64,000 nucleotides of DNA from contig NC_135758.1 in NCBI RefSeq assembly GCF_052425735.1, positions 26,040,001 to 26,104,000 on the forward strand, given 5' to 3'. The notes beneath the pieces were generated by a model. The model was not told where the DNA came from and made no database searches. It was given only the letters and a program-made list of their open reading frames with translations. This DNA comes from Oculina patagonica. Lineage: Eukaryota. The position numbers and the translations under genes are program-made. Of the stretch, positions 2,575 to 56,430 are shown in pieces (positions within the stretch are counted from its first letter, which is position 1; each line of letters begins with the position of its first letter).

Positions 2575-2694
2575 TTATATGGCATCTTTAAATTGTTTAA
2601 CCACTTCCGCTCTCCGCTGCTTTTGCAAGGACAAGCTAGTGCTGGACTCCGTGTTCTGAATGGACTTTTCCCTCACATGAGTACAGAAATCTTC
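2575..2694 (-). CDS. A1 DED-Bcl-2-like protein, exon 2 (EDFCTHVREKS...AEVVKQFKDAI*)
   Basis: ttcgcag acceptor, phase 0, homologous to exon 2 of the other A genes. Confidence 0.85.
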   Translation of the reverse strand, partial: EDFCTHVREKSIQNTESSTSLSLQKQRRAEVVKQFKDAI

Positions 2695-3994
2695 CTGCGA
2701 ATTGAACCAAAGGAGATTTAAGTATTTATTTTAAAACCATTATATTCCAATTGTAAAACGTTTAGTCAATGTTGCTATATCTTGAGTGTCAGAGTTTTTT
2801 TCGAAAGCGAGCCATGACGGATTGGCAAAATAATAGACTTGTTAGCAATGTAAGGTAAAGCAAATTCTTTAATCAAAACGTTTTTCGCTGGCCTCTCTTG
2901 CATCGTTGTTGTGGCTTATACAGTTGGGGATAAGTGCCAGTTTTGGCAAATTTTCGTTGAAGCACTCGGAGAGTTTCCGAATTATTTCATCCAATCAAAA
3001 ACTAGCGCGAATGCACACGAGTACTTCGAAAGCAATCGCGCAAGCAAATAAGTCATGTTGCTAAACAACTTTCAATGAAAACCGCGGGCTCAGTCGCTTC
3101 TCGGAGGAGTGATGTCGCAATCAACTGGCACTTGTTCCCCCGACTGTACAGTTCTTGCAGTGAAAAAAGCAGTTGTCTCCCAAGGGTAGTGTAGCTGAAA
3201 GTGGCACATGCGATGCATTTTTTTTAATTATTATTATTTTTCTCGATGTATTTGGCATGTGCAAGAAGAAGCAGTTGTATGAAATTTGACAAAAATCACA
3301 GCATACAACCACCAACAAGTACCCAGAGTGTTCTTCGAGTTTGTAAGAGATTTATTATTATTATTTTATCCCTTTGGTAATATTAGTTCCGGGGAGGGGG
3401 CAAGGGGTACTACTTATATACGCTTTAAGGGTATGTGACGTTGGATCGGGTCCAATTTTGAACCTTCCATCAGGCCTGTGATGGGGTTCCAAATTTCGCC
3501 ATCCGTCTTAGATGGGGTAGCTAAATGGGGGGATTTAACGTAAAATTTATATATTATTGCTTATTTAACCAGGTAGTTTTGCAATGTGCTAAACTAAATA
3601 TCTGATGTTTAAGTACTGTATAGAAAATTTAAAAATATAAACGTAAACTTCACTTTCGGTCTGGGATTGGGTCTACAATTTAACTCTTCAATCTGAGATG
3701 GAGTAATAAATTTAAGCTTTTCTTGGTCTGAGGAGGAATAGGGGTTTCTAGACACCAGCAGAGCACCAGAATCCAACTTTTGTCAAGTACCATTTCCCCC
3801 ACCCCCACCCCTCCGCCCCAATTGGGTCACCTGTCGCCGTACCTGTTAAATTGGAGCCAATATTATCATCATGCATGCCGTGAATAATTTATATATGTCA
3901 AAAGACAAAACACTCTACAGCGCTCGGGGCGTCGCCGCTTATAGAAGAGTAAATTATCTTTTAAACATTTGTTATTTGAAACTGCGTAACTTAC

Positions 3995-4672
3995 CCAATC
4001 TCCTAGTTCCATCATTCGAGAGCAGAGCTCATCAGCCGCAGTGACACACAGCTCCACCATCGGTTCTTGTCGTTCTTCGTTCAAGGAGGCGGCAGCTATG
4101 ATTTCTCCAGCAATAATAACAAGCAAAGTAAATTTACTCCACGACGTCAGTTCTGTGCAGTCGATTTCCTCTTCAAAATCCACCAACTCTCTCCTCATCT
4201 CTTTACTCGATTCCACTGCAAAGCTGATCTCTGTGATGTCAACTTTGTCTCGAACGATTTCTCTAAGTCTCCCTAAATACCCAGCTACTCTTTTCACGGC
4301 TACAGAACAACAAAGTAACTCCGATTGTAGAATTTTCCTAGCATGGAAATCCAGAAGTAGTGTCAGGTCCCGCTTGATTTCAAACTCGGTCAACTCTTTA
4401 ACAAGATCGATTCTTCCTATATCATGCATAGCTTGTTTCACTAAATTTACATCTTCCCACGATATCTTTCCCTTGTACTCCAAAGAACGTAATATGTCCA
4501 TAGATTTGGTAGCGTGTATCGGAATAAGTCCATTACAGTAAAAACGAAGCTTTTTTAGATGTTCTTTATCCAATTTATTAGAAATTTGTAGTAATACACC
4601 ATTATAAGATACTAAAAGTTTGTCAGTCACAGTCAAAGTTAACGTTGACATGTCTTCAGAATTCAGGTTCAT
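3995..4672 (-). CDS. A1 DED-Bcl-2-like protein, exon 1
   Basis: DED with GRIDL (RxDL) motif, then BH4-like and BH1-like segments; ends ELGDW|gtaagt; start is 4672 or 4651. Confidence 0.85.
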
Positions 4673-4916
4673 CAGTTAAGTTTGCAAGCAAACCTTCCTT
4701 CAATCCTCTTACGTCTTCCAAGGAAATCATCCCAACATGTACTAATGAAGTAAAAATGGCTAAAAATCCGATTTCTTCCATAGTAGCTTGTTTACATCTA
4801 GAGTAGTTGGGTCGAAACTCTTGCTTCTGAGCTTGATCCAATTTACGGGCAATCTTGAGCAGAACCATCGCGTAACTTTGTCGAAATTTATTAATATTAT
4901 CCGCGAACTCCATCAT
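4656..4916 (-). pseudogene. Extra partial DED overlapping the A1 start out of frame
   Basis: FRQSYAMVLLKIARKLDQAQKQEF...LVHVGMISLEDVRGLKEGL aligns with the A-family DED; lacks the RxDL helix. Confidence 0.65.
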
Positions 4917-9620: not shown

Positions 9621-9743
9621 TTATTCATCTATACTTGATAGAATATCTGTCAGTTGTTGAACCACTTCTGCTCTCTGCCTCTTCTGCAAGGACAAGCTAG
9701 GATTGGACTTCATGTTCTGTCGAACTTGGGCACAGAAGTCATC
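9621..9743 (-). CDS. A2 DED-Bcl-2-like protein, exon 2 (DDFCAQVRQNM...EVVQQLTDILSSIDE*)
   Basis: tttacag acceptor, open frame, homologous to the other A exon 2s. Confidence 0.85.
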   Translation of the reverse strand, partial: DDFCAQVRQNMKSNPSLSLQKRQRAEVVQQLTDILSSIDE

Positions 9744-12664: not shown

Positions 12665-13336
12665 CCAGCTTCCCAGTTCCGTCATTCGAGAGCAGAGCTC
12701 ATCAGCCGCAGTGAAACACAGCTCCACCATCGGTTCTTGTCGTTCTTCGTTCATGGAGGCGGCAGCGATGATTTCTCCGGCAATGATAACAAGCATAGTA
12801 ACTCCTCTCCACGAAAACGTCAGTTCTGTACAGTCGATATCCTCTTCAAAATCCACCAACTCTCTCCTCATCTCGTTACTCGATTCCACTGTAGGGATGA
12901 TAGCTGTGATGTCAACTTTGTCTCGAACGATTTCTCTAAGTCTCCCTAAATACCCAGCTACTCTTTTTACGGCCACAGAAGAACAAAGTAAATCCGATTG
13001 TAAGATTTTCCTCGCATGGAAATCCAGAAGTAGTGTCAGATCCCGCTTGATTTCAAACTTGGTCAACTCAGCAACGATGTCAACTCTTCTGATTTCATGC
13101 ATAGCATCCTTCACGAAATTTACGTCTTCCCACGAGATCTTTCTCTCGTGCTCTAAAGTATGTAATATGTCAACAGTATCAGTAACGTTTGTCGGGACAA
13201 GTCCGTTGCAGTATTGACGAAACTTTCTCTGGTGTTTTTTACCCAAATTAAATGAAATCTGTAGTAAAACACCATTGTAAGTTTGTCTCAGTTTGTCAGT
13301 CACAGTATGTGTCGAAGGTAACATGGCAGATGCCAT
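12665..13336 (-). CDS. A2 DED-Bcl-2-like protein, exon 1
   Basis: DED (RRVDI) plus Bcl-2-like region; ends ELGSW|gtaagc; ATG 13336 lies downstream of the TATA box at 13387-13393. Confidence 0.88.
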
Positions 13337-13840: not shown

Positions 13841-14857
13841 ATGGCTCACGTACATCGTAATCATCCCACTTCAGTTGAGAAAAGGGAACAAATAGTTGCC
13901 TTGTGGTCGTCTGGCACAAAACAGGCACAAATCGCAGAAGTTGTTGGATTATCGCCACAAACTGTATCCAATATTGTGAAACATTTTCTGCAACATGGGA
14001 CGTATTTTCCCGGAAAACCTGGTTGGAAAGAACGAACAGTTTCTACCCCAGAAGTCGTTGAATTTGTGGAATACTGTAAAATAACTAAACCTAGTACTTA
14101 TAATTCAGAAATCAGGCAAGCTCTTGTTGGCAACGGAATATGTACGGCCGCCAATGTTCCATCTTGTTCTACAATTAGCGACATTTTGAGGCAAGACCTA
14201 AATTTCACTTTCAAAAAACTTTCCGTTTACCCTGAAGAGTCGCTCAGTGAGGAAAACCTTATAAAAACGCAAGACTACATTATGTTCATGGCTGGAGTTG
14301 ACCCGTTAAGAGTTCATTTTTTTGATGAATCATCAGTGACCAAGACAACACCAAATCGAAATTATGGGCATAGCAGTAAAGGGCAGCCAGCTATTGAAGT
14401 GAAGCGCTATTCTTCAAACGCTACCTACACAGTAAACCTCCTTCATAGTTGTTTTGGAGTAGACTATTTCAACATATTGGAAGGACCTTCTAATGGCCTT
14501 GAAATGCTCCACTTTTTTGAAGAAAGCATGGATATTGTAGACCCAGTTTACGGTAATCCTGTCCTTGCGAATGGTGATATTATTGTGATGGATAATTGCG
14601 GTTTTCATCACGGACGATTTGCAGAAGATGAACTACGAAGAATGCTCGGACGCCGTGGTATTGAACTTGTATTTCAGCCGCCTTATAGTCCCAATTTTAA
14701 TACGTGTGAATTTTGTTTTAGACACATGAAATTATTCTTAAGAAAGCATGAACAATTTTCCCAAAATTACACTGAACTTGCTATTATCGAGGCTTTGCAA
14801 ACACTCACGCCAACAATGTCCCAGAAGTTCTTTCAGCATTGCGGATTTGTCATTTAA
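13841..14857 (+). CDS. DD38E transposase with an N-terminal paired-type (Pax-like) DNA-binding domain
   Basis: Intact 338 aa; catalytic motifs FFDES, VMDN and YSPNFNTCE with 38 residues between the second D and the E. Confidence 0.93.
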   Translation: MAHVHRNHPTSVEKREQIVALWSSGTKQAQIAEVVGLSPQTVSNIVKHFLQHGTYFPGKPGWKERTVSTPEVVEFVEYCKITKPSTYNSEIRQALVGNGICTAANVPSCSTISDILRQDLNFTFKKLSVYPEESLSEENLIKTQDYIMFMAGVDPLRVHFFDESSVTKTTPNRNYGHSSKGQPAIEVKRYSSNATYTVNLLHSCFGVDYFNILEGPSNGLEMLHFFEESMDIVDPVYGNPVLANGDIIVMDNCGFHHGRFAEDELRRMLGRRGIELVFQPPYSPNFNTCEFCFRHMKLFLRKHEQFSQNYTELAIIEALQTLTPTMSQKFFQHCGFVI

Positions 14858-15335: not shown

Positions 15336-16716
15336 TTAACTCTTCCCGCAGTTGTTACTGTCAGTAATGGCAACCGCTATTGTTGCGAGTTCGTCCAAAC
15401 TACATTTTTGTTTGTCTGAAACAGCCTTTGAACGATTATGATTATCCTCTGGTTCACTGGAACTGTCATATTTTCGGCGCTTTTTCCGAGACTTCTTTGA
15501 CCGGCTCTTCTTGCGACGATGAGATTTCTTCTTTCGACGCTTACGTTTTCTTTCAGGCGACGACTCCGACTCTTCGCTACTTTCAGAGCTAGGACTTCTT
15601 GACCTTTTCTGTCTTCGTTCTGTTCGCACAAGTGACACGGCAAAATTAACTGTTGTTTGATTCCCATTTGCGCTTGCCTTTACATCTACCGGGGCATAAA
15701 CTTCATTCATGATGTTTCTTTGTTTATCCAGTAACGATGTAAATAATTCTCGGTCGCTAATTGAATCTGCACGTAGGGGAATTTTATTAGCACAAGCTAA
15801 TCTCAATGTTGCAATGTCCTTTTGCAATTCTAGTTTTCCTTGTGCCGTTTTATAAGGAGTATTTCTCTGGGAAGGCTTTAGCCAGTCGCGGAGTAATTGC
15901 TGATGAGAATGCCGATATTGATTTGGACTGAAAAGAATCGAAGTTCTTTTTTTCCATTGTTACAGTGTCAATTTCTTTCTGAAGGTCTTTGAGTTGTTTT
16001 TTCATATTCCTTATTTCCTCAAAATATTCAGGGTGTTTTTTCTTTTGTCCACAAGAAATATATGAATTACAAGGTGGCGATTTGCATGAACCGTTCCCGC
16101 GGTTTCCCTCAGCCCTGTGGCCACGAATGTGACAATTCCCGCAAATCATGGTTCCGTAGCCGCCAACGCGTGGCGGCTCAACTACATCAATTTCGAGTTC
16201 TCGAATGTGTGTTTCGACAGCCAACTTGCTGTCGTTAAGACTTTGAAGCTTCTGTGTTAGCTGATTTCCTTTGGAAATTTTCCAGTCGCAGACGTCTGCC
16301 GCTGCCGATCTCTCAGAATTTACACTGCTCGCAAACGAGGGAAGAAGGCTCTTGGGTTTCGTTGTTGAAGTGCTTTCCGCACTTGTCCCTACCAAATTAG
16401 CGGAGCGTCTTTTCAGCAAAAACGGAGAGTCACTCTCTCTTACCTTTAAATGGACACGTCGGTAGATTTCTGATCCGCAAGGCGAAGCGTTTCTGAAGGC
16501 TTCCAATACATGTAAAGTCTCATCCCTGTCGATATTTATAAACGTTTGTAAAGACACATCCTTGTAGGATACTACTATTTGTTCGTTGTCAACACCTCGA
16601 AGAACTGGAATAGCTTTTTTCACGCGATCAAGAAGCTCGTTGTAGTTGTTGACTGGCTCCTCAACGTAGAAACTGGCAAATCTATCCTCAAAATACTGTA
16701 GCAGCACCTGAAACAT
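15336..16716 (-). CDS. Transposon cargo ORF2 (~459 aa if the 1-nt frameshift at ~15852 is repaired): PB1-like, coiled coils, Cys/His zinc motif, basic RS-rich tail
   Basis: ORFs 15850-16716 and 15336-15827 join as KYSL-KTAQGKLELQKD if one base is removed; lies entirely inside the TIRs. Confidence 0.7.
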
Positions 16717-17529
16717 TTTGCAAATAACAACAAGCCGTAACCACGAGGTCAATGAACTGAGCAACTTGCTCGCGCGGGTTGCAACTTGCTCCACTCAAAC
16801 TGTCAATCAAATTACCAAGGTTGCGGCGGAAGTTTGCAAGGTTGCCATCAAAAGAACATCCGGTTTGACTGTAACATAGTTATAATGAGAAGAACTTATC
16901 CCTTGTGCTCGTCACAATGAATATCAATGGAGTTATTTATGATTTTACCGTACCCAAATTCGCAAGTAGCCAATCAGAAGCGCGATCTACTGTCCTGATA
17001 TCCTACGATATCAAGTCACTGTCCTGATATGCCACAATATTATGGTCACTTTAAAGTAAAGTAATGTTACCGTCCAATAAATTGAAAAGAGGTTTAACTA
17101 ATAAAACAGAACCTCGTTATTTAAATTTAGCTGGTGTTTACCTGTCGTAAAATGACGAGAAAAACTTTCCCGCCAAAACTAAACTTGAGCGCGCTCGCCA
17201 ATTGCGCCAATTGCGCACTTTAAAACCCCGACTATTCTTTTCAGTTGAAATAACTGCAAATTGAGCACTAAATGATGGACACTACTAAAAGAACAAATTA
17301 AAACACTGTTATACGTACCATTCATATAAACCACGCAAAAATTGACAAATTGCACCTTTTATTAGCCAACACCATTTCCTTACATAAAATAACTAAGCGC
17401 TTACTAATTTTAACCAGGCCCCAGTTAATCATAGAAAGGATAAAGCCAACTACAGGATAAATTACAATCCAGTGGACAGCGTAGTTAGTTTTGTCAACAA
17501 ATGTCCACTAGTTAGCAATTTATTCAAAT

Positions 17530-22776: not shown

Positions 22777-22935
22777 TTAGTTGTGACTACTATTTACTGG
22801 AAAGAAGATAGCATCTACAAACTGTTGAACTACTTCTGCTCTCTGCCTCTGCAAGGACAAGCTAGGATTGGACTCCATGTTCTGTTGATGGTAAACTAGA
22901 TTGTATCTTGCCTTCACGTGGACACAAAAATCTTC
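22777..22935 (-). CDS. A3 DED-Bcl-2-like protein, exon 2 (EDFCVHVKARY...EVVQQFVDAIFFPVNSSHN*)
   Basis: tttatag acceptor, open frame. Confidence 0.87.
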   Translation of the reverse strand, partial: EDFCVHVKARYNLVYHQQNMESNPSLSLQRQRAEVVQQFVDAIFFPVNSSHN

Positions 22936-24241: not shown

Positions 24242-24901
24242 CCAACTTCCTAAGCCAGTCATTCGAGAGCAAAGCTCATCAGCGGCAGTTGAACACAACT
24301 CCGTCAATGCTTCTCGTCGTTCTTCGTTGAAGGAAGCCTTGGTTATGATTTCTCCAGCAATAATAACAAGCATAGTAAATTCATTCCACGAAAATGTCAG
24401 TTCCCTGCAGTCGATCTCCTCTTCAAAATCTACCAACGCTTTCCGAATGTCTTTACTCGATTCCACTGTTAAACTTATCGCTGCGATGTCAACCTTGTCT
24501 CGAACGATTTCCATAAGTCTCACTAAATGTCCTGTTACCACTTTAACGGCTACAGAAGAACAATATAGATCCAATTGTAGAATTTTCCTTGTATAGAAAT
24601 CCAGAAGAAGTGTTAGATCCCGCTTGATTTCAAACTCGGTTAACTCTTTAACGATATCAAATCTTCTAATTTTATGCATAGCTTCTTTCAGTAAATTTAT
24701 ATCCTCCCACGAAATCTTTCTCTCGTGCTCCAAAGTATGTAATATGTCAATAGTATCCTTAACTCGTATAGGAATAAATCCATTGCAGTAATTACTAAGG
24801 TTTCTCTGATGTTCTGTATCCAGTTTAAAAGAAATCTGAAGTAAAACACCATTGTAATCTTGTCGTAGTTTGTCGGTCACAGTTCTTGTTGTCGATGTCA
24901 T
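24242..24901 (-). CDS. A3 DED-Bcl-2-like protein, exon 1
   Basis: gccgccatcATG start; DED (RRFDI); TLLLDFYTRKILQ BH4-like; FSWNEFTMLVIIAGEI BH1-like; GLGSW|gtaagc. Confidence 0.9.
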
Positions 24902-25416: not shown

Positions 25417-26139
25417 ATGGCGTTGCAACCAGCAATTTCTAGATTGAAATTGCCCCGTTCACACACGTACAGCATTTTAAAGTATCAGCATCCACCTGTT
25501 TTTAAAAAGTTTGTAGTCCATTTTGTTAAGTTCTTAAGCAGCGATGATCGAGCAGCATTTAGACACTGGTGCATAGGAATAGTTCCGGGTTCGAAGCTAG
25601 ACGCAACCGAAGCCAGCGACGGTGATATCTTCAAGTTAATCGAGTTTCTGTGCAATGCTAATGAGTTGTCCCTCACTGACATGTCACTTCTAAAAGACTT
25701 TCTGTTAAGCGTTGGTCGTCTTGACGTGTTGCAAGCGTTGGAACGAGTCGAGTTGCTTACTTCTGTTGGTGGCATTTTAGAAGATTACGTCAAAGGTTTG
25801 CGTCAAGGCACTTCTGATGTGAAATTTGCTGATAGTTATGCAAATGTCGTTGAGTTTTTGCTAAGGATCAGGGATGAAAATCAGGAACTGATCTCTCCAC
25901 TCTTGGAACAATTCTTGCAAGTTAACGATGATGGTAAAGCTCTAGCGGTTTTGGATAGCGTCATTCTGGATTCTCAACTATCATGGTCCACGGTTATATC
26001 TTCATTGGTGATTACGGGTGAGCTGTATTCTTCATTCAGTCCAGATGATTTAGCAGAGAACGGTTTTTTCGTATGTCTGTTTTCCGAGACCAAGGCCAGT
26101 GAATTTCTCACAGGATGGATCCTTGAAAACGGTGGTCTG
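25417..26139 (+). CDS. B1 DED-Bcl-2-like protein, exon 1
   Basis: DED-like region (GRLDVL), VVEFLLRIRDEN BH3-like, DSQLSWSTVISSL BH1-like, WILENGGL|gtaagt BH2. Confidence 0.9.
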
Positions 26140-27608: not shown

Positions 27609-27734
27609 AAAGCGTTAGACGAATTGGTTAGAAAGAAACAACAAGTTGCAAGAAGTGGTTCTGGACTGTCGTCCATTGAAGAATCTCTGAAAGAAAACAT
27701 CAAGCTGCTTGGAAATCGCGTGGACGTTCAGTGA
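27609..27734 (+). CDS. B1 exon 2 (KALDELVRKKQ...LKENIKLLGNRVDVQ*)
   Basis: Polypyrimidine tract then taatag acceptor; paralogous exon at 31891. Confidence 0.85.
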   Translation, partial: KALDELVRKKQQVARSGSGLSSIEESLKENIKLLGNRVDVQ

Positions 27735-29219: not shown

Positions 29220-29472
29220 AACACGGTAAACTTTGATTGCAGGCAAATTTTTCTTTTATCTTCTCACGTCCGTCCGAAATCATCCCAGCGTATTCTAATG
29301 AAGTTAAAATGTTTAAAAATCTATTTTCTTTCACTGGAACCAGTCCAGATCTGTGCTAGTAGAATCGAAATCCTTGTTGCTGAGCTCGATCCAAATTACG
29401 AGCTATCTGGAGTAGAACAGCAGCATAAGTCCGTGGAAGTTTATTGTCAGTGTCATCGCTGGATAGTAACAT
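29220..29472 (-). pseudogene. DED-only remnant head-to-head with B2
   Basis: MLLSSDDTDNKLPRTYAAVLLQIARNLDRAQQQGFRFY* (TAG at 29356-29358) then ...ILTSLEYAGMIS; similar to 4656-4916. Confidence 0.7.
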
Positions 29473-29747: not shown

Positions 29748-30456
29748 ATGGAGTTGCGACCAGCAATTTCGAGATTGAAAGCGTCCTTTTCACCTGCGTA
29801 CTACTCGTTGAAGGGTCAGGCAGTATTTAAGCAGTTTGTAATTCATTTAGTAAGGGCATTGAGTATCGATGAGCGAGAGGCATTTAGGCACTGGTGTATA
29901 GGTATAATCCCTGAGTCGAAGTTAGATGTGAATGTAGCCCGTGATGGTGTCATGTTTAGATTAATGGAGTTTCTGTGCAATGATTGTAAATTGTCTTTTA
30001 CTGATCTTAAAAAGTTTCTATCAAGTGTAAACCGTTATGATCTGTTCGAAGCATTGGAACGAGTAGAGGTACTTAATTATATGGGTTGTATTGTAGAGGA
30101 TTATGTCAACAGTAGTTTGCGACAAGGCAATTGTAAGAAATTTGCTGATAGTTTTGAGAATATAGTAGGGTTTATGCATATGATTAGACAAGGTAATCAG
30201 GAATTGATCTCTCCACTCTTGGAACAATTCATGGAAGCTAACGAGAATGGTAAAGCCTTAGAGATTTTGGATAGCGTCATTCTGGATTCTCAACTATCAT
30301 GGTCTGTGGTTATATCTTCATTGGTGATTATGGGTGAGCTGTTTGCTTCGTTCACTCCAGATGATTTAGCAGAGAAGTGGCTATTACGTATGTCTGTTTT
30401 GCGAGACCAGGGCTAGTGAATTTCTTACAGGATGGATCCGTAAAAACGGTGGTTTA
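29748..30456 (+). pseudogene. B2 DED-Bcl-2-like, exon 1 with a +1 frameshift near 30378
   Basis: Paralog of B1; one extra base in GAGAAGTGGC shifts the frame before WIRKNGGL|gtaagt. Confidence 0.8.
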
Positions 30457-31890: not shown

Positions 31891-32028
31891 AAAGCTTTAG
31901 AAGAATTGATAAAGAAGAATCACGAAGTTGCTAGCAGTGGTTCTGCGGTGTCATCTATTGGAGAATCTTTAAAGAATAACTTCAAGCTACTTGGAAATCG
32001 AGTTGACACGGAGTTGATAAATCGTTGA
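31891..32028 (+). CDS. B2 exon 2 (KALEELIKKN...LKNNFKLLGNRVDTELINR*)
   Basis: tttatag acceptor, open frame, homologous to B1 exon 2. Confidence 0.75.
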   Translation, partial: KALEELIKKNHEVASSGSAVSSIGESLKNNFKLLGNRVDTELINR

Positions 32029-35424: not shown

Positions 35425-35565
35425 CTAATAGAAGATGGTATCCTTCAACTTCTTTACCATTCCATTTAGCTCCAGCTGCCAGGCCAAGCCAGGCTTGGAA
35501 TCCGGATCAGCATGTTGGTGGCAAAGGTGATGGTAGCGTTCCTTCACAAACTGGCAAAAATCTTC
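35425..35565 (-). CDS. A4 DED-Bcl-2-like protein, exon 2 (EDFCQFVKERY...GMVKKLKDTIFY*)
   Basis: gtatag acceptor, open frame. Confidence 0.85.
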   Translation of the reverse strand, partial: EDFCQFVKERYHHLCHQHADPDSKPGLAWQLELNGMVKKLKDTIFY

Positions 35566-36515: not shown

Positions 36516-37181
36516 CCAGCTTCCAAGTTCGGCGAGCTTCAAGGAAAGATGATTACCTAGCTCAGTGGCCAACTTCACTGCATACTTGTAAGGCTGGTCA
36601 CGGGCTTTCATCTTGGACCCGACCAAGACAATCTCTGCAGCAATGGCGACAAGCGAGGCGAAGGTACTCCAATTCTCAGCTGCTCCGATATCGCCACCTA
36701 ACAGGGCTGTTGGCACGGCTTCCAAAATGTCGCTGGCATTCTTTCCGGACTGTAGAAGAGAGCATAACAGACCCCCAAAATCAACTCGATCTTGAGCTAG
36801 CTCCATCATTTCCGCCAAGTAATGGCCGACGCTCAAAGCTGATGGATTTAAAGACGGGCCTGAAACTTGCCTCTTCCAAGCGTAAATCGTCAGCTCTCTG
36901 GCAATCTCAAACGCAGTCAGTTTCGTCAACAGATCCTCTCTTCTGATTGCACGCATGAACACCTTTAGGTAGCTTAGATTTTCCCACGAAAGTTTCTGAA
37001 CGTCTTCCAAGTGTTCGAAAATCTGAACGCTACTGTTCGATGCCTGGGAGGAGATACTTAAATATTTTCTTGCAATGTCGTCTTTGCAGTAGAATAAAAG
37101 TTGTTTGAACTCTTCCTCCGTCAGATCATTAGCAATCTGAATCAGTACAGTTCTATAAACCTGTCTCAAGACTCCTGTCAT
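36516..37181 (-). CDS. A4 DED-Bcl-2-like protein, exon 1
   Basis: Most canonical DED in the cluster (LIQIANDLTEEEFKQLLFYC...RREDLL); ENWSTFASLVAIAAEI BH1-like; ELGSW|gtgagt. Confidence 0.9.
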
Positions 37182-39623: not shown

Positions 39624-39764
39624 CTAAAAAAAGATGGTATTCTCTAACTCTTCGACCGCGTTAGATATTTGCCTTTTCAACGACAAGTTAGGGCTGCGTC
39701 CAGTGTCCTCATGTCCATGAAAAAACAGCTTGTGTCGTTTCTTTACATCGGTACAGAAATCTTC
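39624..39764 (-). CDS. A5 DED-Bcl-2-like protein, exon 2 (EDFCTDVKKRH...ISNAVEELENTIFF*)
   Basis: ctgtag acceptor, open frame, closest to A6 exon 2. Confidence 0.85.
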   Translation of the reverse strand, partial: EDFCTDVKKRHKLFFHGHEDTGRSPNLSLKRQISNAVEELENTIFF

Positions 39765-41687: not shown

Positions 41688-42010
41688 GTGGTAGTGGTAG
41701 TGGTAGTGGTAGTGGCAGTGGAAGTGGTGGTGGTAGTGGTAGTGGCAGTGGCAGTGGTAGTGGCAGTGGTAGTGGCAGTGGCAGTGGTAGTGGTAGTGGT
41801 AGTGGTAGTTGTAGTTGTAGTTGTAGTGGCAGTGGCAGTGGCAGTGGCAGTGGCAGTGGCAGTGGCAGTAGCAGTGGCAGTGGTAGTGGTAGTGGCAGTG
41901 GCAGTGGCGGGGAGTGGCAGTGGCAGTGGCAGTGGCAGTGGCAGTGGCAGTAGCAGTGGCAGTGGTAGTGGTAGTGGCAGTGGCAGTGGTAGTGGTAATA
42001 GTAATAGTAA
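40130..42010. repeat. (GTGGTA/GTGGCA)n compound microsatellite containing assembly gaps
   Basis: Direct observation; abuts the 3' end of a LINE. Confidence 0.97.
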
Positions 42011-43322: not shown

Positions 43323-44900
43323 TAGTATAGTGGTAGTGGTAGTGGTAGTGGCAGTGGCAGTGGCAGTGGCAGTGGCAGTGGCAGTGGCAGTGGTAGTGGT
43401 AGTGGTAGTGGAAGTGGCAGTGGCAGTGGTAGTGGTAGTGGCAGTGGCAGTGGTAGTGGTAGTTGTAGTGGTAGTGGCAGTGGTAGTGGTAGTGGTAGTG
43501 GTAGTGGTAGTGGTAGTGGTAGTGGCAGTGGCAGTGGCAGTGGTAGTGGTAGTGGAAGTGGCAGTGGCAGTGGTAGTGGTAGTGGTAGTGGTAGTGGCAG
43601 TGGTAGTGGCAGTGGCAGTGGCAGTGGTAGTGGCAGTGGTAGTGGTAGTGGTAGTGGTAGTGGAAGTGGCAGTGGTAGTGGTAGTGGTAGTGGTAGTGGT
43701 AGTGGCAGTGGTAGTGGCAGTGGCAGTGGCAGTGGTAGTGGCAGTGGTAGTAGTAGTGGTAGTGGTAGTGGCAGTGGCAGTGGCAGTGGCAGTGGTAGTG
43801 GTAGTGGTAGTGGTGTGGTTGTGGCAGTGGTAGTTGTAGTTGCAGTGGTAGTGGCAGTGGTAGTGGCAGTGGTAGTAGTAGTGGTAGTGGCAGTGGTAGT
43901 AGTAGTGGTAGTGGTAGTGGTAGTGGTAGTGGTAGTGGCAGTGGTAGTGGTAGTGGTAGTGGTAGTGGTAGTGGTTGTGGCAGTGGTAGTTGTAGTTGCA
44001 GTGGTAGTGGCAGTGGTAGTGGCAGTGGTAGTGGTAGTGGAAGTGGCAGTGGCAGTGGTAGTGGTAGTGGTAGTGGTAGTGGTAGTGGTAGTGGCAGTGG
44101 TAGTGGCAGTGGCAGTGGTAGTGGCAGTGGTAGTGGCAGTGGCAGTGGTAGTAGTAGTGGTAGTGGTAGTGGCAGTGGCAGTGGTTGTGGTAGTGGTAGT
44201 GGTAGTGGTAGTGGTAGTGGTAGTGGTTGTGGCAGTGGTAGTTGTAGTTGCAGTGGTAGTGGCAGTGGCAGTGGTAGTGGCAGTGGCAGTGGCAGTTGCA
44301 GTGGTAGTGGTTGTGGCAGTGGCAGTGGTAGTGGCAGTGGTAGTGGTAGTGGTAGTGGCAGTGGCAGTGGTAGTGGTAGTGGTAGTGGCAGTGGTAGTTG
44401 TAGTGGCAGTGGTAGTTGTAGTGGCAGTGGCAGTGGTAGTGGTAGTAGTAGTGGCAGTGGCAGTGGCAGTGGCAGTGGTAGTGGCAGTGGCAGTGGTAGT
44501 GGCAGTGGCAGTGGTAGTGGCAGTGGCAGTGGTAGTGGTAGTGGTAGTGGTAGTGGTAGTGGTAGTGGTAGTGGCAGTGGCAGTGGCAGTGGTAGTGGTA
44601 GTGGTAGTGGAAGTTGAAGTGGCAGTGGCAGTGGCAGTGGCAGTGGCAGTGGCAGTGGTAGTGGTAGTAATAGTTGTAGTGGTAGTGGTAGTGGTAGTGG
44701 CAGGGGTAGTGGTAGTGGTAGTGGTAGTGGTAGTGGTAGTTGTAGTGGCAGTGGTAGTGGTAGTGGTAGTGGTAGTGGCAGTGGCAGTGGTAGTGGTAGT
44801 GGCAGTGGTAGTGGTAGTGGTAGTGGTAGTGGTAGTGTTAGTAGTAGTAGTATAATAGTAGTAATAGTAGTAGTCAGTAGTACCAATAGTAGTAAGTAAG
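43323..44900. repeat. (GTGGTA/GTGGCA)n compound microsatellite
   Basis: Direct observation; forms the tail of the second LINE copy. Confidence 0.97.
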
Positions 44901-44902
44901 TA

Positions 44903-45472
44903 ATAAATTGCTTTATTTGCATGACCGTTACAGTTAAAAGTATTGCAAAAGCATATTCAAACTAAAAGTAACAAAACGCGATCCTATAATATCATTTTGA
45001 AACTTAATAATTAAAATACATCGTTTTCACCTGATAATAACAATGTATCACATATATTCATACATGAAGTAATAAACTTCATCACTAGCTTATTAACATG
45101 ATAATCATTAGAGTTCATAAGAAGTTTGATGCTTTCTGAGGTTAATTTCCTTTCAAAGTCAGGTACTTTCTCATTGATTCGTTTCAAGAATGTCCGCCTT
45201 TGCGAAGAGTCTTTGCTACAATCTAATAAGAAGTGTGTTTCGTTTTCAAGTTAATTTCACTTGCACAATGGACATAATCTATTTGCTCTGGGTATATGGT
45301 CACTCTGATATCAACCTAGTTCAATCATAAGTTTGTGATTACTTAATTTAAATTTCACCAGATTCTTTCTTTCATTAAAATATCTTAACTGTTGTAGACA
45401 ATCAGATGCAGCGTATTCATCTCTAAAAACTTTATAAAATTCCAATTTCTTTGAGTGTTCCAGGCTATGTCG
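44903..45472 (-). mobile_element. Second, shorter 3' fragment of the same LINE
   Basis: Highly similar to 42010-42557. Confidence 0.85.
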
Positions 45473-46532: not shown

Positions 46533-47204
46533 CCAAGATCCAAGCTGAAGCATTGGGTGACAAAGTTCATCTGCCAATGTTATACACATCTCGATGGCTT
46601 CTTCTCGTTTTTGTCCGGTCTGTGGTGAATATACAGAAGATACGGCTATTATTTCACCGGCGACTGCGACAAGCATGGAAAATTTACGCCAGGTCATTTT
46701 CCGTGTACCACACTCGTTGACAAAGCGTAGCCAAAGATCTTTAGGATTCATGCGTGATGTTTTCAGCATTCCTTTAACGTCGAGTCTTCCTTGAAAACAT
46801 TCCATCAGTTGAACGAGATTCTCAGCCGCATTCGTCGCCGATGACTGGTAAAACGAATTCAATCCATTTTTTTTCTTGATGTAGAAATCCAGAAGATTGG
46901 ACAGGTCTCTTTTTGCTTCGAACGCGTTCACTTTGACAACGAGATCTTCTCTTCCAACATCATGTAAACATTTCTTCAAGAAGGTAACGTCTACCCACGA
47001 CATCTTTGCAACTTCTTCCAAAGAACGGAAAAGGTCCAGAACTTCTTTAACTTGTCTAGGAACTAGCCCAATACAGAGAAACTGGAGTTCTTTACTCTGC
47101 TCTTTGTCCAGATCGCGAGCAATCTGAACCAAAGCAGTTCTGTAAATCTGTCTAAGTCGGTCAGTCATTTCGTTAGTAAAAGTGTAAGTGATGATGGCGG
47201 TCAT
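46533..47204 (-). CDS. A5 DED-Bcl-2-like protein, exon 1
   Basis: DED (GREDL); MTWRKFSMLVAVAGEI BH1-like; QLGSW|gtaagt; 6.8-kb intron to 39764. Confidence 0.88.
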
Positions 47205-47559: not shown

Positions 47560-48385
47560 CCATGGCTGGCTAGCTAGCTGACTGATTGACTGGCTGAAAT
47601 ATTGACTGANNNNNNNNNNNNNNNNNNNNNNNNNNNNNNNNNNNNNNNNNNNNNNNNNNNNNNNNNNNNNNNNNNNNNNNNNNNNNNNNNNNNNNNNNNN
47701 NNNNNNNNNNNNNNNNNNNNNNNNNNNNNNNNNNNNNNNNNNNNNNNNNNNNNNNNNCTGGCTGACTGACTGACTGGCTGGCTGGCTGACTGACTGACTG
47801 ACTTGCTGTCTGGCTGGATGGCTGGCTAGCTAACTGATTGCCTGAGTGATTGACTGACTGACTGACTGGCTGGCTGGCTGGTTGGCTGGCTGGCTGGCTA
47901 GCTGACTGATTGACTGGCTGACATATTGACTGACTGGCCGGCTGACTGGCNNNNNNNNNNNNNNNNNNNNNNNNNNNNNNNNNNNNNNNNNNNNNNNNNN
48001 NNNNNNNNNNNNNNNNNNNNNNNNNNNNNNNNNNNNNNNNNNNNNNNNNNNNNNNNNNNNNNNNNNNNNNNNNNNNNNNNNNNNNNNNNNNNNNNNNNNN
48101 NNNNNNNNNNNNNNNNNNNNNNNNNNNNNNNNNNNNNNNNNNNNNNNNNNNNNNNNNNNNNNNNNNNNNNNNNNNNNNNNNNNNNNNNNNNNNNNNNNNN
48201 NNNNNNNNNNNNNNNNNNNNNNNNNNNNNNNNNNNNNNNNNNNNNNNNNNNNNNNNNNNNNNNNNNNNNNNNNNNNNNNNNNNNNNNNNNNNNNNNNNNN
48301 NNNNNNNNNNNNNNCGGCTGACTGATTGACTGGCTAACTGATTGATTGACGGACTGACTGGCTGGCTGGCTGGCTGGCTAGCTGA
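47560..48385. repeat. (GACT/GGCT)n microsatellite containing gaps
   Basis: Direct observation. Confidence 0.9.
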
Positions 48386-51300
48386 CCTGTCTCGAGGGTC
48401 TCAATGGGATTAACCGTTAGCCGTAATACGGCCAAATTAGAAATTTAGCCGTTAGGCGTAGAAATTAATAACACGCATTTATAGCGCGCAAATTCAGCTT
48501 GGGTTTTCAAATGCGCGTTACAAATAGAAATTAAAAAATAGATAAAAAACAGATTTAAATAAACAAAATATAGATTAAAATATAAAAAACTAAAAATATA
48601 CATATATATGTTCACTAATAAAAAGCTTGTTTAAAAAGATTTGCTTTAGAGCTCGCTTGAAATAATCCGAATGGATTCTCCTCAGTTCTGACGGTAGCTG
48701 GTTTCACAGTAAAGGCGCAGCCGCTGCAAAAGCCCTGTCACCGAGGGTGAATAGAGTGTCAACAGGTGGTGACAAAAGCGCTAGCAGTTCATTATTTGAT
48801 CTAACCGTTAGCCGTAAAATATGTTAGCCGTAACGATCAAGCCAAGAAGTTTGGCCAACGGAAATTAGCTCTGAAACTTAACTGTCTCGTGGAAATTAGT
48901 GGCAAAATAATTTAAAATTAAATGGGCTACGATCGATCCCGGCTAAAACGGTTGAGACACGTTGCTAATTTTCACCAATTTTGGTACTACAGCTCATTTT
49001 TATCAATCCCCCTACCCTATTTCAATGTTTTTCAATGTTGTCGTTTTATAGGAACAAAGCCTGGTGAATTGCAAACCCCATAAATCAACATTGAGTTGGG
49101 GAGAGGAGGGCGGATAACATGTTTTTCACAAGCTTGTCAGTCAAGACATTCGCGAAAAACTGTGAAATGCGTTTGTCTTAACTGGTTTCGTCCGGGATTT
49201 TAGATTCCTTTTTCTCCCCAGATTGGTCCTAGGACCTTAAAATGTTTTATAACAATGGACATTAATATATACTATATACTAAAAAGAGCTAAAAAGAGTT
49301 GAGGTGAGGTGAGGTGAAGTGAGTTGAAGTGAGGTGTCCGCAAGGCGGGAGTTGACTGTAGTTACCATTTCGCCAATTTTTCTCGGTATAATTTCTCGAT
49401 TCCTCTCTGATAATCTTCCTCTGGGTGTATGAGTAAATACATACTTTCCTTTTCCCTCACTCACTTTCGTACGAAGGAAAATAATTTCAGTCCTTCTCCA
49501 AAATTCACACTAAAACACACTACAACAATATAAAGGCAGGCAGTGTTCGATCACTTGCCCAGCGGTTGTTTAATGTAAACTCCAGTGTAAAATTACAATC
49601 AAATAGAACATACAGAGAAAATTACAAAAAATATATATCGGAAAAAACTGTAAGCTTACTTCCCGTTAATATTCACGACTTATACACAGACGCGAGCGTT
49701 TATATAGCAGCGAGCTAAATGTTTTTTAATTGCCGTCCGCGTACGGTATATAGGTAAAATAAGTACTAGAAAACAGAATACGGTACGCAACAAAAATGGA
49801 GTGTATCTTATGTCTAAAAGATCTGTGCAAACGCCTGATACGAGAACTCCCAAAATTGGGAACGTATTCCCCGACCAAATGCAGGCGGGGGCTAGAGGTT
49901 TAATTACAGCCTAGAAGTACTCGTATAAATTGAAAAATAAGGAAATTGCTTGAGTGTATACGACGCCTTCAGTAGCAAAAAACACGGCAAGTTCTCAAAA
50001 AAAGTTTTGAAAACTACGAAAGCTGAGGTGAATTAATAACAACTGTCAAAACTTTTACATGTAAACAACAAACAAAACTCAATATACGCCATAACGGCAC
50101 ACATGCGTTCTATGCCGAATACAAAATTATTTACACCATCTGTCACTGCCACTTTCAGTTAAGTTCTGCCGAATGCAAGTACATAAAAAAAAAACTTTAA
50201 CGAAGCACATATTTTTCCACAGACAAATTAGATCTTGAAGATAGCAACTGCTGCATCATATGCTCTCCTTGGATCCCGCGAACTTCACCCAGGTACAAGC
50301 AAATCCTAGTAAAAAACGAAAACAATAAAATAGCTGAGAAAAACAGAGCACGCGTAAGAACAACTAACAAAGAGTACAAAGAGGGCGAGGGCAGAAAAAA
50401 TGAACGAAAGACACCCACACGGCTAGACAAAAACAATACCTGACCTGAGAGAACAAAAAATTGCCATTGCCAAAGTACCAACCCGCGAACGCCTGAGCTC
50501 TCCTCAAAAATGGATAACTGAATAACATGCCACCCGGGCAAAAAACCTTGACTAGAAAAACAACAATCCGTTGCCCTAAAACCGGCAGCACACCTAATGT
50601 AAATGCCGGTACTCCAAGACTAACAGCCAAAAAAGGGAAAATGTCAGAAGTCAGATTATGCAAGTTAAAAAATCATGCTCCAAGACCTGAAGAATACTAG
50701 CCGCCCGTTGACTGCAGGTAAACCATTTAACTCAAAAAAATAAAGAAAAAATAACATTATGGGACAAAAAAACTATGCCAAGATTATGACCACCGGAATT
50801 CAACATCAACAGCAGCTATCTGTCAGAATGTTAAAAAACAGCCGAACGGTAGTTCCTACTGAAATAAAAGTAATGTAACAGAAAGTTTGCATCCTTCCTA
50901 GATACTGGAAAAGGAGATGCACGAATTTCTCCCAAAAATCTGCATGAACTATAAGCTTCCCCTAAACATCTTATTTTGTAAAAGAGGTTGGCTTACCCGA
51001 TTCGATCTCAATATTTTCCAGCGAGAACTATTCACCAGAACAGAAACCTCCAAAAACTTCCAGGTGTATCGTCATGATGGACCATCTCAACATCGTTATT
51101 CTGTCCTGCTGCTTAGCTGAATCTCAGAGAAGCTGATCCAGGTTTGTATCCAGTCGAGCAGTTCCAGTGGCCCAAGCTGCCGCATCGGAAACAGACATCT
51201 GCTTGAAAGGCTGTAAATAAATATAAAAAAAAAAAAAAAAAAAAAAAAAAACGAGCGGCCAAAAAAGGGAGAAACGACAAACACCCCTAAATTGTCATTG

Positions 51301-52913: not shown

Positions 52914-53057
52914 CTACTGGAAAAATATCATCTCCTGTAACTCTTCGACTATGTTGGCTATTTGCTTTGTTAGCAACAAGTCAGAGCTGCATCCAGTATC
53001 CTGTCGCCCATTATAAAACCGATTGTGTCGTTCCTTCACGTATGTACAAAAATCAGC
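52914..53057 (-). CDS. A6 DED-Bcl-2-like protein, exon 2 (ADFCTYVKERH...IANIVEELQEMIFFQ*)
   Basis: tttgcag acceptor, open frame. Confidence 0.85.
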   Translation of the reverse strand, partial: ADFCTYVKERHNRFYNGRQDTGCSSDLLLTKQIANIVEELQEMIFFQ

Positions 53058-54039
53058 CTGCAAATGGATAAATTTTAAGTTAATAAATGAATTGTAAATG
53101 AATACTGAAATAAATAATAAATAAACAATTTCGTGATTCTACAATCTAATTTACTAACAAATTTATCTCTAATTGCTGAAACTTTCGGACAGTGAAATAC
53201 ATAAACGGCAGGCAATGCATCCAAAAGCGATGAAATTTGTCAAAAATATAAAACTGACAACTTCTGTGTTGAATGTTTTGTTCAACAAAAGTTGCGTTAT
53301 CTTGTAGCGTAACATCCAATATACGATACAAGGTCAAAGGCTGATTTAAAATTTATTAACAACGGCCTTTTAGTTAAAGATTTCTGCTTACTAAATATAA
53401 CTAAATATAATATAACTCTCAAATATAATTTGTCTCTTTCGTTTATACTTTGTATTATTCATTTCCAGTTGTCCGGGCCTGGCCGGGAGTACTTTGCTTT
53501 GTGTTAAATTGATTTCTGGTCACGTAACGTTTTTCCTACTCATCAGTCGATCGCGTGCGCCCCGGGCGTGCGCCAGACTAGAAAGGCCGAAAGATCCGTT
53601 CACTCACTCGATGACATTAATTGAATAGTTTTACTAACACTTTTTACTATTAGGATTATACCGAAATAGGGCAAGGACATTTAAAGGGCATGTAAACCCT
53701 AAAATGCTATTTCTTTTTGTCATATATTTCTTTAGTATATGTATCACGTATGCCAAATCTGTTAATATTTTTTTCAGCAAAGCAAGTTTTCTTGTTGAAA
53801 ACGCTCCTCAAAATTCAAAATATCCGCCATCTTGAATTGCGCCATCTTTCCTGTGACGTAATGGGTGGAATCTTTGTTTACCGGAAGCCAAAAGTATTCC
53901 TCTACAACCTTTGAAATAAGCGTATATGTACAGGAATTCTGTTGCAATATTCTCAATTTTTCAGACGCTAAAGTATTGTGCCACTTAGTTTTGTGGTAAC
54001 CAACGCCATATGAGGGAATGTTTCCAATGAGCGATATAT

Positions 54040-54450
54040 TTCTTTTTTATGTGATCTACAATGCACCTTAGTGCCATCTAAAGTGTCACTATTTAAGTAA
54101 GTTATGTCGTAATAATTTAAGGCCTTTAAAAAGATTGGAGTAAAACCTTTTTTTACCATTGTAGTGAATATCCATTGCCATTACCAGTGACTGTCCGACG
54201 AGGGAGTTGTGATCCTTATAGAATCGACCTAGTTCTTCCCGGCATTCAATGTTAGATGCCTTGTTATTAACTTGTACCGGTATGTAGAGTTTGCAAAACA
54301 GTATTAAAGTGTCCTTTTTCAATTGGTGAAGTGTCCCAAGACTTGAAATCTGATTTGAAATAGACACCCCAGGCTTTGCAGTTATCAGTCAAAATGGGGG
54401 AGCCCATCGTGTCAAAAATTTTGCAAGCAGGAGACAGGCTCTCAGTCAGC
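54040..54450 (-). mobile_element. Degenerate LINE fragment related to the 42-43 kb element
   Basis: KSWDTSPIEK and VNNKASNIECREELGR match the 42501-43304 ORF, with frameshifts. Confidence 0.75.
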
Positions 54451-55803
54451 CATGCATTCGACAAGCTATGAATCTATTAATCTAAAATTAACAGTTTACG
54501 TGTGCCGAACCTAATTATTAGATTGATGAAAAGTTCAACGTATGAATCATTTAGGTTCGACGGGAGAGGGTTTTTGATTGGCGAGTGAGCTGTCATGAAC
54601 GCGGTCATGCACAAAATTTATTAAGGCGCGACGTAGGCTCTGAACCGCTTTAAAATAATCAAGATTGTCGTCCGACGCTGAAACTCTCTGTTATCCTGTT
54701 TTTCCTTTTGTTTTTTACTATATCTCTAAAACCAAAGGAAACAAGAACTAAGACTAGAAACTTAGTGGTTAAATTTACAGAACCGATCAATACTAAAAAC
54801 ATTTCACTGAAACCGGGCGACTGTACTTAAAAAAATGCTGTCTGTATTTGTTTTTAACCCCAGAGAAATATGCTCGCCCTTTAACGTATAACAGAGTTCT
54901 TATTTATTTGGTCCATAAAGTGTGCAACTTGAAGAGCCGTGATTTTTTTCTCTCTCTCTGGCTGCAGAATGAAAAAGTTCGACGTCAGTTAAACCGGGCC
55001 TAAGAACTAAGAGAAAAGGCAAAAGCGCAGAACTCGTTCCATGCTGTTCTTAAAATTTTCAGTTTATTTATCTTCATTCATGCTGATTTTTTTTATTGAA
55101 TTGACTTGACTAAACGACTTATTCAAGGATTTAATAAGCAGTTACTATGTAAAACGTCAGGTTCTCTGTAGGAGCATAAGCAGCTTGGCTAATAACAACA
55201 GTAATAGTGGCGGCAGAAGTAGTAGCATAAACAGCAGCAGCAGTAGCTGTAGACATTCCGCTATAGCACCTTGAGCAAAATAGTGAAGCGTAGAAGTTTA
55301 AAGTTTGAGTCAAACTTAAAACTTGTTTTGTAATTTTGATTGCTAAATTAAATGCTTTAGGTCGTTTATGGCGTGAAATGACGACGAAATGCCTTCACAT
55401 AATGTAAACGGCAGGTGTGATTTTTGAATATTCATTTCCGCATCGGAGACCCTATCGATTCGTTTTGCCTCGAAAATCAAGCGAGCGAATGAGGTGCTGC
55501 GCTCCGAGCGAAATAAGTCTCTTGGACTAGTACTGGTATATCAAATCGCCGGAGACGAAAAAACTTGTGACGGATAACTATGTCAAAAACTTGGCGAAAA
55601 GCTTGATTTGTGGAGGAGTAAAACAAAATCTTTATCTGTAAATGCACCCCCGACATTAAACAACTTCCGCTCTTTCACTTTCACTTTCGGGAAGGGAACT
55701 GAATCTGTTGCTTCATGCACGGGAATGTGTACACTTCAGGCGAAAAGAGGTAGCAAGTTAAATACTTGTTTCAATTAGAATTAATGTAAAAAGTTAAACT
55801 TAC

Positions 55804-56430
55804 CCAAGTTCCAAGCTGAAGCATGGGATGACAAAGCTTGTCAGCCAATGTTATGCACAACTCCATGGCTTGGTCTGGCGTTTGCCCGGACTGCGATGAA
55901 GATACGGCAATTATTTCACCGGCGACTGCGACAAGCATGGAAAAGGTACCCCACGTCATTTTCTGTAGATCACATTCGCTTGCAAAGCGTAGCCAAAGTT
56001 CTTCAGGATTCTTGCCTGATGTCCTCAGCATTCCTCTAACGTCGAGACTTCCTTGAAAACATTTCATCAGTTGAACGAGGCACTTAGCCGCGTTGGTCAT
56101 CTTTGTCTGGTAAATGGAGTCCAATTCATTCTTTTTCTTGTTATAGAAATTCAGAAGGATTGACAGGTCTCTTTTCACTTCGAATGCGGTCAGTTTGACA
56201 ACGAGGTCCTCTCTTCCAACATCATGCAAACATTTCTTCAGGAAGGTAACGTCGACCCACGAAATCTTTCCAACTTCCTCCAAAGAACGGAAAAGGGTCA
56301 GAACTTCTTTAACTCGTCTAGGAACAAGCCCAATACAGAGAAATTGAAGTTCTTTACGCTGCCTTTTGTCCAGATGGCGAGCAATCTGAACCAAAACAGC
56401 TCTGTAAATCTGTACAAATTTGTCAGACAT
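55804..56430 (-). CDS. A6 DED-Bcl-2-like protein, exon 1
   Basis: Close paralog of A5; DED (GREDL), MTWGTFSMLVAVAGEI, QLGTW|gtaagt. Confidence 0.87.

Follow-up and report, generated by a model that had tools for sequence, protein, structure and literature searches.

A 64,000-nucleotide stretch of the genome of the stony coral Oculina patagonica (RefSeq assembly GCF_052425735.1, contig NC_135758.1, positions 26,040,001 to 26,104,000; G000:C1:26040001-26104000, hereafter the window) was found to carry a birth-and-death tandem cluster of genes in two paralogous subfamilies, A and B, in which a death-effector domain (DED) is joined to a homologous Bcl-2 domain. Animal apoptosis has two arms, one defined by DEDs and the other by Bcl-2 folds, and to our knowledge no described protein combines them. 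Taken whole, the explanation of the locus as a tandem family of DED-Bcl-2 proteins is probably correct; the mechanism is graded separately below. Whole-genome scans were carried out on the 529-Mb assembly.

The window holds six intact genes on the minus strand (A1 to A6), one intact gene on the plus strand (B1), a frameshifted copy (B2) and four remnants (Table 1). Listing of the open reading frames (ORFs) recovered all eight at the positions given in the initial annotation, and its two-exon genes of about 255-285 residues agree with the two coding exons and 256-282 residues obtained here (A1 265, A2 264, A3 272, A4 268, A5 270, A6 256 and B1 282 residues). The spliced frames of A1-A6 and B1 contain one stop each, at the end. 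The first exon of the A copies closes with LGSW, LGDW or LGTW and the donor TGG/GTAAGT (GTGAGT in A4; the slash marks the splice site), and that of B1 with NGGL and CTG/GTAAGT. Second exons were placed by similarity between paralogs, an AG acceptor with a pyrimidine tract, and phase 0. B2 had been listed alongside B1 as a two-exon gene. In the assembly it is not intact, because a 1-bp insertion near 30377, seen in comparison with B1, shifts the frame ahead of the BH2-like motif. The corresponding GenBank gene, ACROYT_G002229 (P0130), bypasses the frameshifted region via an artificial intron. No coding exon is overlapped by a run of undetermined bases (N gap).

Five independent lines of evidence, drawn from sequence comparison and predicted structures, indicate that the C-terminal domain is a true, diverged Bcl-2 homologue. 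When a profile of 75 C-terminal sequences was aligned by hhalign with 11 canonical Oculina Bcl-2 exons, a probability of 93.4% and an E-value of 2.4e-7 were obtained, and the alignment ran end to end, its 130 columns reaching from the BH4 region as far as the terminal GGW. Control alignments, one reversed and 20 with shuffled columns, gave probabilities of at most 0.5% and E-values of at least 0.13. Searched against PDB sequences, the C-terminal profile had zebrafish NRZ/BCL2L10 (6fbx) as its top match, full length and ending at ENGGW (E 0.004), and also matched Bcl-2-like protein 10 (2kua; E 0.011). The BH4, BH3, BH1 and BH2 assignments made by eye in the initial annotation coincide with the hidden Markov model (HMM) alignments. 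When 1.8 billion representatives were searched exhaustively with an HMM, the domain turned up in about 100 clusters at 50% identity; in most full-length matches (approximately 210-320 residues) it is preceded by some 90-140 N-terminal residues.

Two of the relatives, P0219 and P0220, found in metagenome scaffolds only, pass the Pfam cut-offs twice, with 43.5 and 42.9 bits for the DED (PF01335, gathering score 35.9 bits) and 33.6 and 34.3 bits for Bcl-2 (PF00452, gathering score 31.4 bits). P0219 matches A5 and A6 over almost its full length with E-values of 1e-15 and 2e-15, the other A copies with 1e-7 to 6e-13, and B1 with 9e-7. Both relatives keep the canonical PWMSENGGW, after which the same read-through intron follows; a by-eye search of the scaffolds identified no exon 2 for either.

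Gene structure was also compared. At the canonical Bcl-2 loci of the Oculina genome, all 12 of 12 exon ends fall right after GGW (GGL in one case) and are followed by GT in phase 0. The phase-0 intron of the fused genes interrupts the same codon position in the same phase, after TGG in the A copies (LGSW/GT) and after Leu in the B copies (CTG in B1, TTA in B2). Everything up to the BH2 Trp is encoded in one exon, with the DED in frame at its 5' end, and a short tail exon follows. Canonical cnidarian Bcl-2 genes likewise have two coding exons, the first ending at the BH2 Trp, and share with the fusions the order BH4, BH3, BH1, BH2. An exon boundary at GGW is a hallmark of the Bcl-2 family and is highly conserved from sponges to mammals (PMC8998228). 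The cluster is a clean case of intron position rescuing a homology call that lies below sequence thresholds.

AlphaFold models of A2 (predicted local distance difference test, pLDDT, 84; predicted template-modelling score, pTM, 0.83) and B1 (mean pLDDT 71) were searched with Foldseek, the check proposed in the initial annotation, and a DED followed by a Bcl-2 bundle was predicted. The top 50 PDB matches of the two models were nearly all BAX, Mcl-1, A1, NRZ, BAK and BOK; matches to the family had probabilities of 0.9-1.0 and target-normalised template-modelling scores of 0.55-0.69, and the best match of the A2 model was monomeric BAX (E 2.4e-3). An exhaustive VIA structure search gave Z-scores of 10-12.3 over 130-144 residues, including Mcl-1, Bcl-xL, BOK, NRZ and BAX. 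The A2 model matched KsBcl-2 (Z 12.3), Trichoplax Bcl-2L2 (11.8) and Hydra Bcl-2-4 (11.5) over 131-140 residues, covering the targets nearly whole, and the B1 model matched Mcl-1 and Bcl-xL with Z 10.8. Apart from death-fold matches, the lists obtained with these predicted models hold Bcl-2 family entries almost exclusively.

The N-terminal domain, by its sequence and its modelled fold, is assigned as a DED. Pfam scores exceed the gathering score in A1 (47.7 bits), A3 (38.6), A4 (64.6), A5 (55.4) and A6 (54.4) and fall below it in A2 (31.6 bits), B1 (E 4e-4) and B2 (E 0.04); a profile of the B family matched the FADD DED with E 1e-4. The RxDL motifs quoted in the initial annotation were all located, as GRIDL in A1, RREDL in A4, GREDL in A5 and A6, and NRYDL in B2; A2, A3 and B1 carry the conservative variants RRVDI, RRFDI and GRLDV. 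Residues 16-101 of the A2 model superimposed on the DEDs of PEA-15 (VIA Z 13.7) and FADD (13.6) with a root-mean-square deviation (rmsd) of 1.5-1.6 Å over 83-86 residues, and the wider set of PEA-15, FADD, vFLIP and caspase-8 DEDs gave Z 12.6-13.7 at approximately 1.5 Å. The B1 model matched the FADD DED with Z 11.2. Each protein has a single DED, and the tandem DEDs of FLIP-type decoys are absent by both Pfam and structure search. On a by-eye reading, an aromatic/Leu patch, FL, in A5 and A6 aligns with the FL of FADD.

The order and register of the BH motifs are retained in the HMM alignments and their signatures have decayed. The NWGR of BH1, whose arginine is the partner of the BH3 aspartate, is replaced by SWN in the A copies and SWS in the B copies, with loss of the arginine, and the Gly-Asp of BH3 by Arg-Asp or Arg-Glu; replacement of both signatures had been noted initially. 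BH2 reads WILENGGL in B and is reduced to LGSW in A. The exon-2 tails are hydrophilic: a Kyte-Doolittle scan of the last 60 residues detected no C-terminal membrane anchor in the window proteins (19-residue maximum 0.01-0.73). Some accepted Bcl-2 members, among them the coral Bok proteins, also lack an anchor (PMC4715348). The central helix is strongly hydrophobic (Kyte-Doolittle up to 1.76). In the predicted structures the final helix of the DED runs on into the first of the Bcl-2 domain as a single helix of 27-29 residues (H85-111 in A2), which suggests a rigid two-domain unit. Elsewhere in the genome, a Bcl-2 locus of canonical length (L012, G000:C2:43307157-43307453) has HIGT in place of NWGR and ends NGGL/GT like the B subfamily; on the tree described below it lies among the canonical genes on a long branch.

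Logan contigs of four sequencing runs were aligned to window positions 22600-28400. The splice joints of A3 (22935/24242) and B1 (26139/27609), with GT..AG on the coding strand, are present in three RNA-like runs from three studies, and single contigs span the whole A3 coding sequence. In two of the RNA-like runs the depth over the A3 intron is zero or near zero. A fourth, DNA-like run covers the region evenly and contains neither joint. A3 and B1, at least, are transcribed and spliced as predicted; in the stretches aligned, joints were observed for these two genes and for none of A1, A2, A4, A5, A6 and B2. Neither this transcript check nor the structural one, both named in the initial annotation as possible refutations, overturned the proposal. 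When close paralogs are compared, the ratio of nonsynonymous to synonymous substitution rates (dN/dS) lies at 0.30-0.43 for either domain, a sign of selection that is purifying but relaxed, a regime shared by many expanded gene families of immunity or cell death.

Homology between the A and B proteins extends from end to end (hhalign 97.7%, E 2e-12). The interval C1:26.027-26.096 Mb holds every full-length A copy of the genome, eight in number with two just left of the window, and both B copies, as expected of the lineage expansion proposed initially. The family is conserved in full-length form across corals (82 and 54 database matches), more than chance would give; the named relatives are full length in Oculina, Desmophyllum and Montipora and shorter in the Porites entry, and the Atlas clusters are labelled Cnidaria. 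A3 and B1 are arranged head to head with their ATGs 515 bp apart (24901-25417), B2 faces a decayed A remnant at 281 bp (29466-29748), and a decayed B remnant stands opposite the left-most A copy. An A-type and a B-type gene of Desmophyllum pertusum occupy the consecutive locus tags OS493_029248 and OS493_029249. From this arrangement the ancestral duplication unit looks like a divergent A/B pair, and the spacing of 281-515 bp suggests a shared bidirectional promoter and a paired unit of duplication. In a maximum-likelihood tree of 21 DED-fused and 10 canonical Oculina Bcl-2 domains, unrooted and with long branches, a single branch separates fused from canonical domains (support 92/95; recovered in 93% of bootstrap trees), a pattern that fits a single ancient DED-Bcl-2 fusion. 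The P0219 type branches basal to the A clade.

The possibility was considered that the C-terminal domain is an unrelated helical bundle whose motif matches arose by chance. Several observations weigh against Bcl-2 homology. Every window protein falls short of the PF00452 gathering score, B1 with 14.8-16.5 bits, and no A copy from the window was listed in that search. Helical bundles readily yield middling Z-scores, and since VIA values below about 13 can be non-specific for such folds, Z 10-12.3 alone is not decisive. The Foldseek E-values for Bcl-2 matches are just 2e-3 to 0.2, and the structures are predictions, that of B1 with a mean pLDDT of only 71. On the other side, sub-threshold PF00452 matches occur in 23 of the 75 family members and the next commonest family in 4 of the 75. 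Single-sequence Pfam searches being insufficient for this half of the protein, homology was settled by profiles, structure and gene structure: the profile-profile E-value of 2.4e-7 stands against at least 0.13 in shuffled controls, the alignments are collinear and end to end and stop at the BH2 Trp, P0219 and P0220 form a bridge above the Pfam thresholds for both domains, and intron position and phase are identical to 12 of 12 canonical Bcl-2 genes. A chance resemblance is thus largely refuted already and extremely improbable. It is also very unlikely that the cluster is evolutionary debris, that is, duplicates still expressed but without function and turning into pseudogenes. B2 is frameshifted and four remnants are truncated. 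Furthermore, deep RNA-like contigs pass unspliced through the A6 donor (53856-55821, contiguous to exon 1) in an alignment that ended at 53300, 243 bp short of exon 2; this coverage of the intron could represent a retained intron, a transcript embedded in it or DNA within the runs, whose RNA status is the tool's guess, their coverage pattern being cDNA-like. However, seven copies have intact two-exon frames, dN/dS is well under 1 in both domains, and full-length relatives occur in Desmophyllum and Montipora and in the clusters recovered by the HMM search.

For the function of the fused proteins, three readings were weighed. The one we favor, tentatively and by analogy, is that of a soluble, DED-recruited, FLIP-like regulator. 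The proteins would be soluble because they have no C-terminal membrane anchor, and would enter FADD/caspase-8-type assemblies by homotypic DED contacts, given the kept RxDL motif and the FL patch of A5 and A6. There the Bcl-2 fold would be displayed as a protein-binding or capping module and not as a mitochondrial pore, so that the proteins would act as FLIP-like modulators of death-complex assembly and may also tether partners from the Bcl-2 network. With the BH1 arginine and the BH3 Gly-Asp replaced, the canonical BH3-groove chemistry is probably altered. A predicted complex of A2 with B1 scored 0.00 in a run made without controls and carries no weight either way, and among the DED loci retrieved from the genome no Oculina FADD could be cleanly singled out. 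A pro-death effector is an unlikely alternative, in which DED oligomerisation on a FADD/caspase-8 platform would cluster the Bcl-2 fold, which would act as BAX/BAK or activate them and join the extrinsic and intrinsic pathways directly, the role of Bid in mammals. Such an effector would be in keeping with monomeric BAX as the best Foldseek match of the A2 model (E 2.4e-3), with the hydrophobic central helix and with the apparently rigid coupling of the two domains via the long helix (H85-111, pTM 0.83); it is opposed by the lack of a membrane anchor, the replaced BH3 Gly-Asp and NWGR arginine, and closest sequence matches that are pro-survival or divergent BCL2L10-type proteins. We would also not expect a non-apoptotic immune scaffold, with a Bcl-2 fold re-used as in poxvirus N1/A52 and a DED entering NF-kB or other innate complexes, although the lineage-specific tandem expansion, which would then reflect pathogen conflict or symbiont management, the remnants, the moderate constraint (dN/dS 0.3-0.4), the lost groove residues and anchor, and matches of the B1 model to vaccinia N1L and A52 (Z 7.5-7.9) would all fit it. 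Cellular Bcl-2 proteins outscore the poxviral ones.

Among known systems, the BCL2L10 group (zebrafish NRZ, mouse Diva/Boo) gives the best sequence-profile matches to the coral domain and has the same fold (Z 10.3-10.4); the BH1 of 2kua, SWSQ, resembles the coral SWS/SWN, and NRZ retains NWGR. Unlike this group, the coral proteins add an N-terminal DED and have no C-terminal anchor, and the A subfamily has lost the W..NGG of BH2 (LGSW). Canonical cnidarian Bcl-2 proteins are mostly anchored, most of the coral ones being mitochondrial (PMC4715348), whereas the fusions have hydrophilic tails; against PF00452, the canonical proteins score 36-109 bits and the window fusions at most 16.5 bits. The Oculina genome has 14 six-frame PF00452 matches, and 11 Bcl-2 proteins were reported in a PF00452 and BLAST survey of Acropora millepora (PMC4715348).

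FADD, like the fusions, has a single N-terminal DED with the RxDL motif kept, and it is the best or near-best DED match (E 1e-4; Z 11.2-13.6), but its second domain is a receptor-binding death domain where the coral proteins have a Bcl-2 fold. c-FLIP and the vFLIPs (MC159, K13) are non-catalytic DED proteins that modulate caspase-8 DED filaments and serve as the working analogy for the mechanism; vFLIP DEDs match the coral models with Z 10.6-13.4. FLIPs carry their DEDs in tandem and sometimes a pseudo-caspase domain as well, in contrast to the one DED plus Bcl-2 fold of the corals, and membership among the FLIPs is not claimed. Bid is a soluble protein with a Bcl-2-like helical fold and links the extrinsic to the intrinsic pathway. 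It is tied to caspase-8 by cleavage, not by a DED, and may be compared in role only; no Bid-specific similarity was seen.

Table 1. Features of the DED-Bcl-2 cluster, in window coordinates, with the basis of each assignment.
Feature	Position	Strand	Basis
A1 coding exon 1 (DED and Bcl-2-like domain up to BH2 Trp)	3995..4672	-	ORF; Pfam DED 47.7 bits; donor TGG/GTAAGT
A1 coding exon 2 (39-residue hydrophilic tail and stop)	2575..2694	-	exon-2 homology, AG acceptor, phase 0
A2 coding exon 1	12665..13336	-	ORF; identical to GenBank model P0011 (ACROYT_G002224)
A2 coding exon 2	9621..9743	-	splice is that of annotated protein P0011
A3 coding exon 1	24242..24901	-	ORF; fully covered by RNA-like contigs
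A3 coding exon 2	22777..22935	-	joint 22935/24242, GT..AG ends, RNA-like contigs of three studies
A4 coding exon 1, most divergent A copy	36516..37181	-	Pfam DED 64.6 bits; donor TGG/GTGAGT
A4 coding exon 2, by homology only	35425..35565	-	exon-2 similarity
A5 coding exon 1	46533..47204	-	ORF, Pfam DED, donor
A5 putative coding exon 2, 6768 nt downstream of exon 1	39624..39764	-	sole exon-2-like sequence between A4 and A5
A6 coding exon 1	55804..56430	-	ORF, Pfam DED, donor
A6 coding exon 2	52914..53057	-	tblastn E 1e-14 to A5 exon 2, CAG acceptor, phase 0
B1 coding exon 1 (weak DED and Bcl-2-like domain ending WILENGGL)	25417..26139	+	100% identical to P0083 (ACROYT_G002228)
B1 coding exon 2	27609..27734	+	joint 26139/27609, GT..AG ends, RNA-like contigs of three studies
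B2 exon 1, 1-bp insertion near 30377 (frameshift or assembly error)	29748..30456	+	comparison with B1
B2 exon 2	31891..32028	+	B1 exon 2 homology
A-type DED remnant immediately 5' of A1	4689..4901	-	
A-type DED remnant, internal stop, head-to-head with B2	29275..29466	-	
B-type remnant, profile positions 66-153	327..578	+	identical to N-terminal half of RefSeq model P0085
B-type DED remnant with stop	891..1073	+	

Assembly gaps cluster around A5. Its putative intron crosses a microsatellite tract, a reverse-transcriptase fragment and two N gaps within the tract (40682-40843 and 41090-41279), and because of these gaps the link between A5 exons 1 and 2 is only putative. The tract as a whole (40046-44922) extends over approximately 5 kb with extreme GC skew and includes the reverse-transcriptase fragment at 42501-43304 (-). 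The A5 stop codon is separated by 107 nt from a further gap on its 3' side (39377-39517), and two more (47610-47757 and 47951-48314) are found upstream of the A5 ATG, at 0.4-1.1 kb. Tetranucleotide (CTGG/CTGA)n repeats stand on both sides of these upstream gaps (47560-48420) and likely caused the assembly to break there.

The left edge of the window cuts through a truncated B-type gene (B0), with parts at 327-578 (+) and G000:C1:26039403-26039609. Its translation is the N-terminal half of RefSeq LOC144643445 isoform X3 (P0085), the C-terminal half of which is that of B1, 25 kb away; the isoform is either a chimeric gene model or a case of trans-paralog splicing. Between A2 and A3, an intact ORF of 338 residues (13841-14857, +) encodes a paired-box-like helix-turn-helix and a DDE_3 transposase (Pfam E 5e-18 and 3.5e-15) and, from its sequence, looks like a potentially active Tc1/mariner-type element. 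Two adjacent ORFs of 314 and 163 residues at 15336-16794 (-), the latter rich in Ser, Arg and Lys, have no Pfam match and could belong to a single gene or to a mobile element.

Exons of a dienelactone hydrolase (DLH) adjoin A6 at 57257-57622 and 59651-60082 (-). The second match of the A2 model in AFDB is a 786-residue entry named 'Protein usf', residues 198-443 of which match the DED-Bcl-2 model. The name is presumably that of a DLH-family protein, and the entry probably stems from another coral in which genes were merged into one model; together with the DLH exons next to A6 it hints at conserved synteny.

In the databases, members of the family are named 'hypothetical', 'uncharacterized' or 'DED domain-containing', and precomputed Pfam results show the DED alone for the A and B types and both DED and Bcl-2 for the P0219 type, in line with the expectation that routine annotation would miss the Bcl-2 half. 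No fusion of a DED or a death domain with Bcl-2 was found in the literature searched, a weak negative as subscription journals were mostly outside its coverage. A death-domain-Bcl-2 fusion in Acropora, mentioned in the initial annotation, could not be confirmed, and a term search of the text of PMC4715348 found no death-fold fusion among the Acropora Bcl-2 proteins. A 2022 survey of metazoan Bcl-2 proteins that included three corals never mentions the DED (PMC8998228). What is new, within this incomplete coverage of the literature, is the domain architecture and the subfamily; DEDs and Bcl-2 domains as kinds are known.

With a DED-Bcl-2 family that is conserved, expressed and expanded, reef-building corals would have a class of regulator unreported in the two Pfam- and BLAST-based surveys (PMC4715348, PMC8998228). 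A bolder reading, which we regard as quite unlikely, is that stony corals and possibly other cnidarians have the death-receptor and mitochondrial pathways bridged directly by a protein. In such a bridge the attached Bcl-2 fold would oligomerise, or capture partners, with the DED filament as template, and the head-to-head A/B pairs would encode opposing (pro- and anti-death) or heterodimerising partners. If this were true, one polypeptide would do what vertebrates achieve via caspase-8 cleavage of Bid. The family would offer a handle on how early animals wired the extrinsic to the intrinsic pathway, on the role of a Bcl-2 fold without a membrane anchor or canonical groove residues, and on the contribution of such proteins to cell-death decisions in bleaching, disease and symbiosis.

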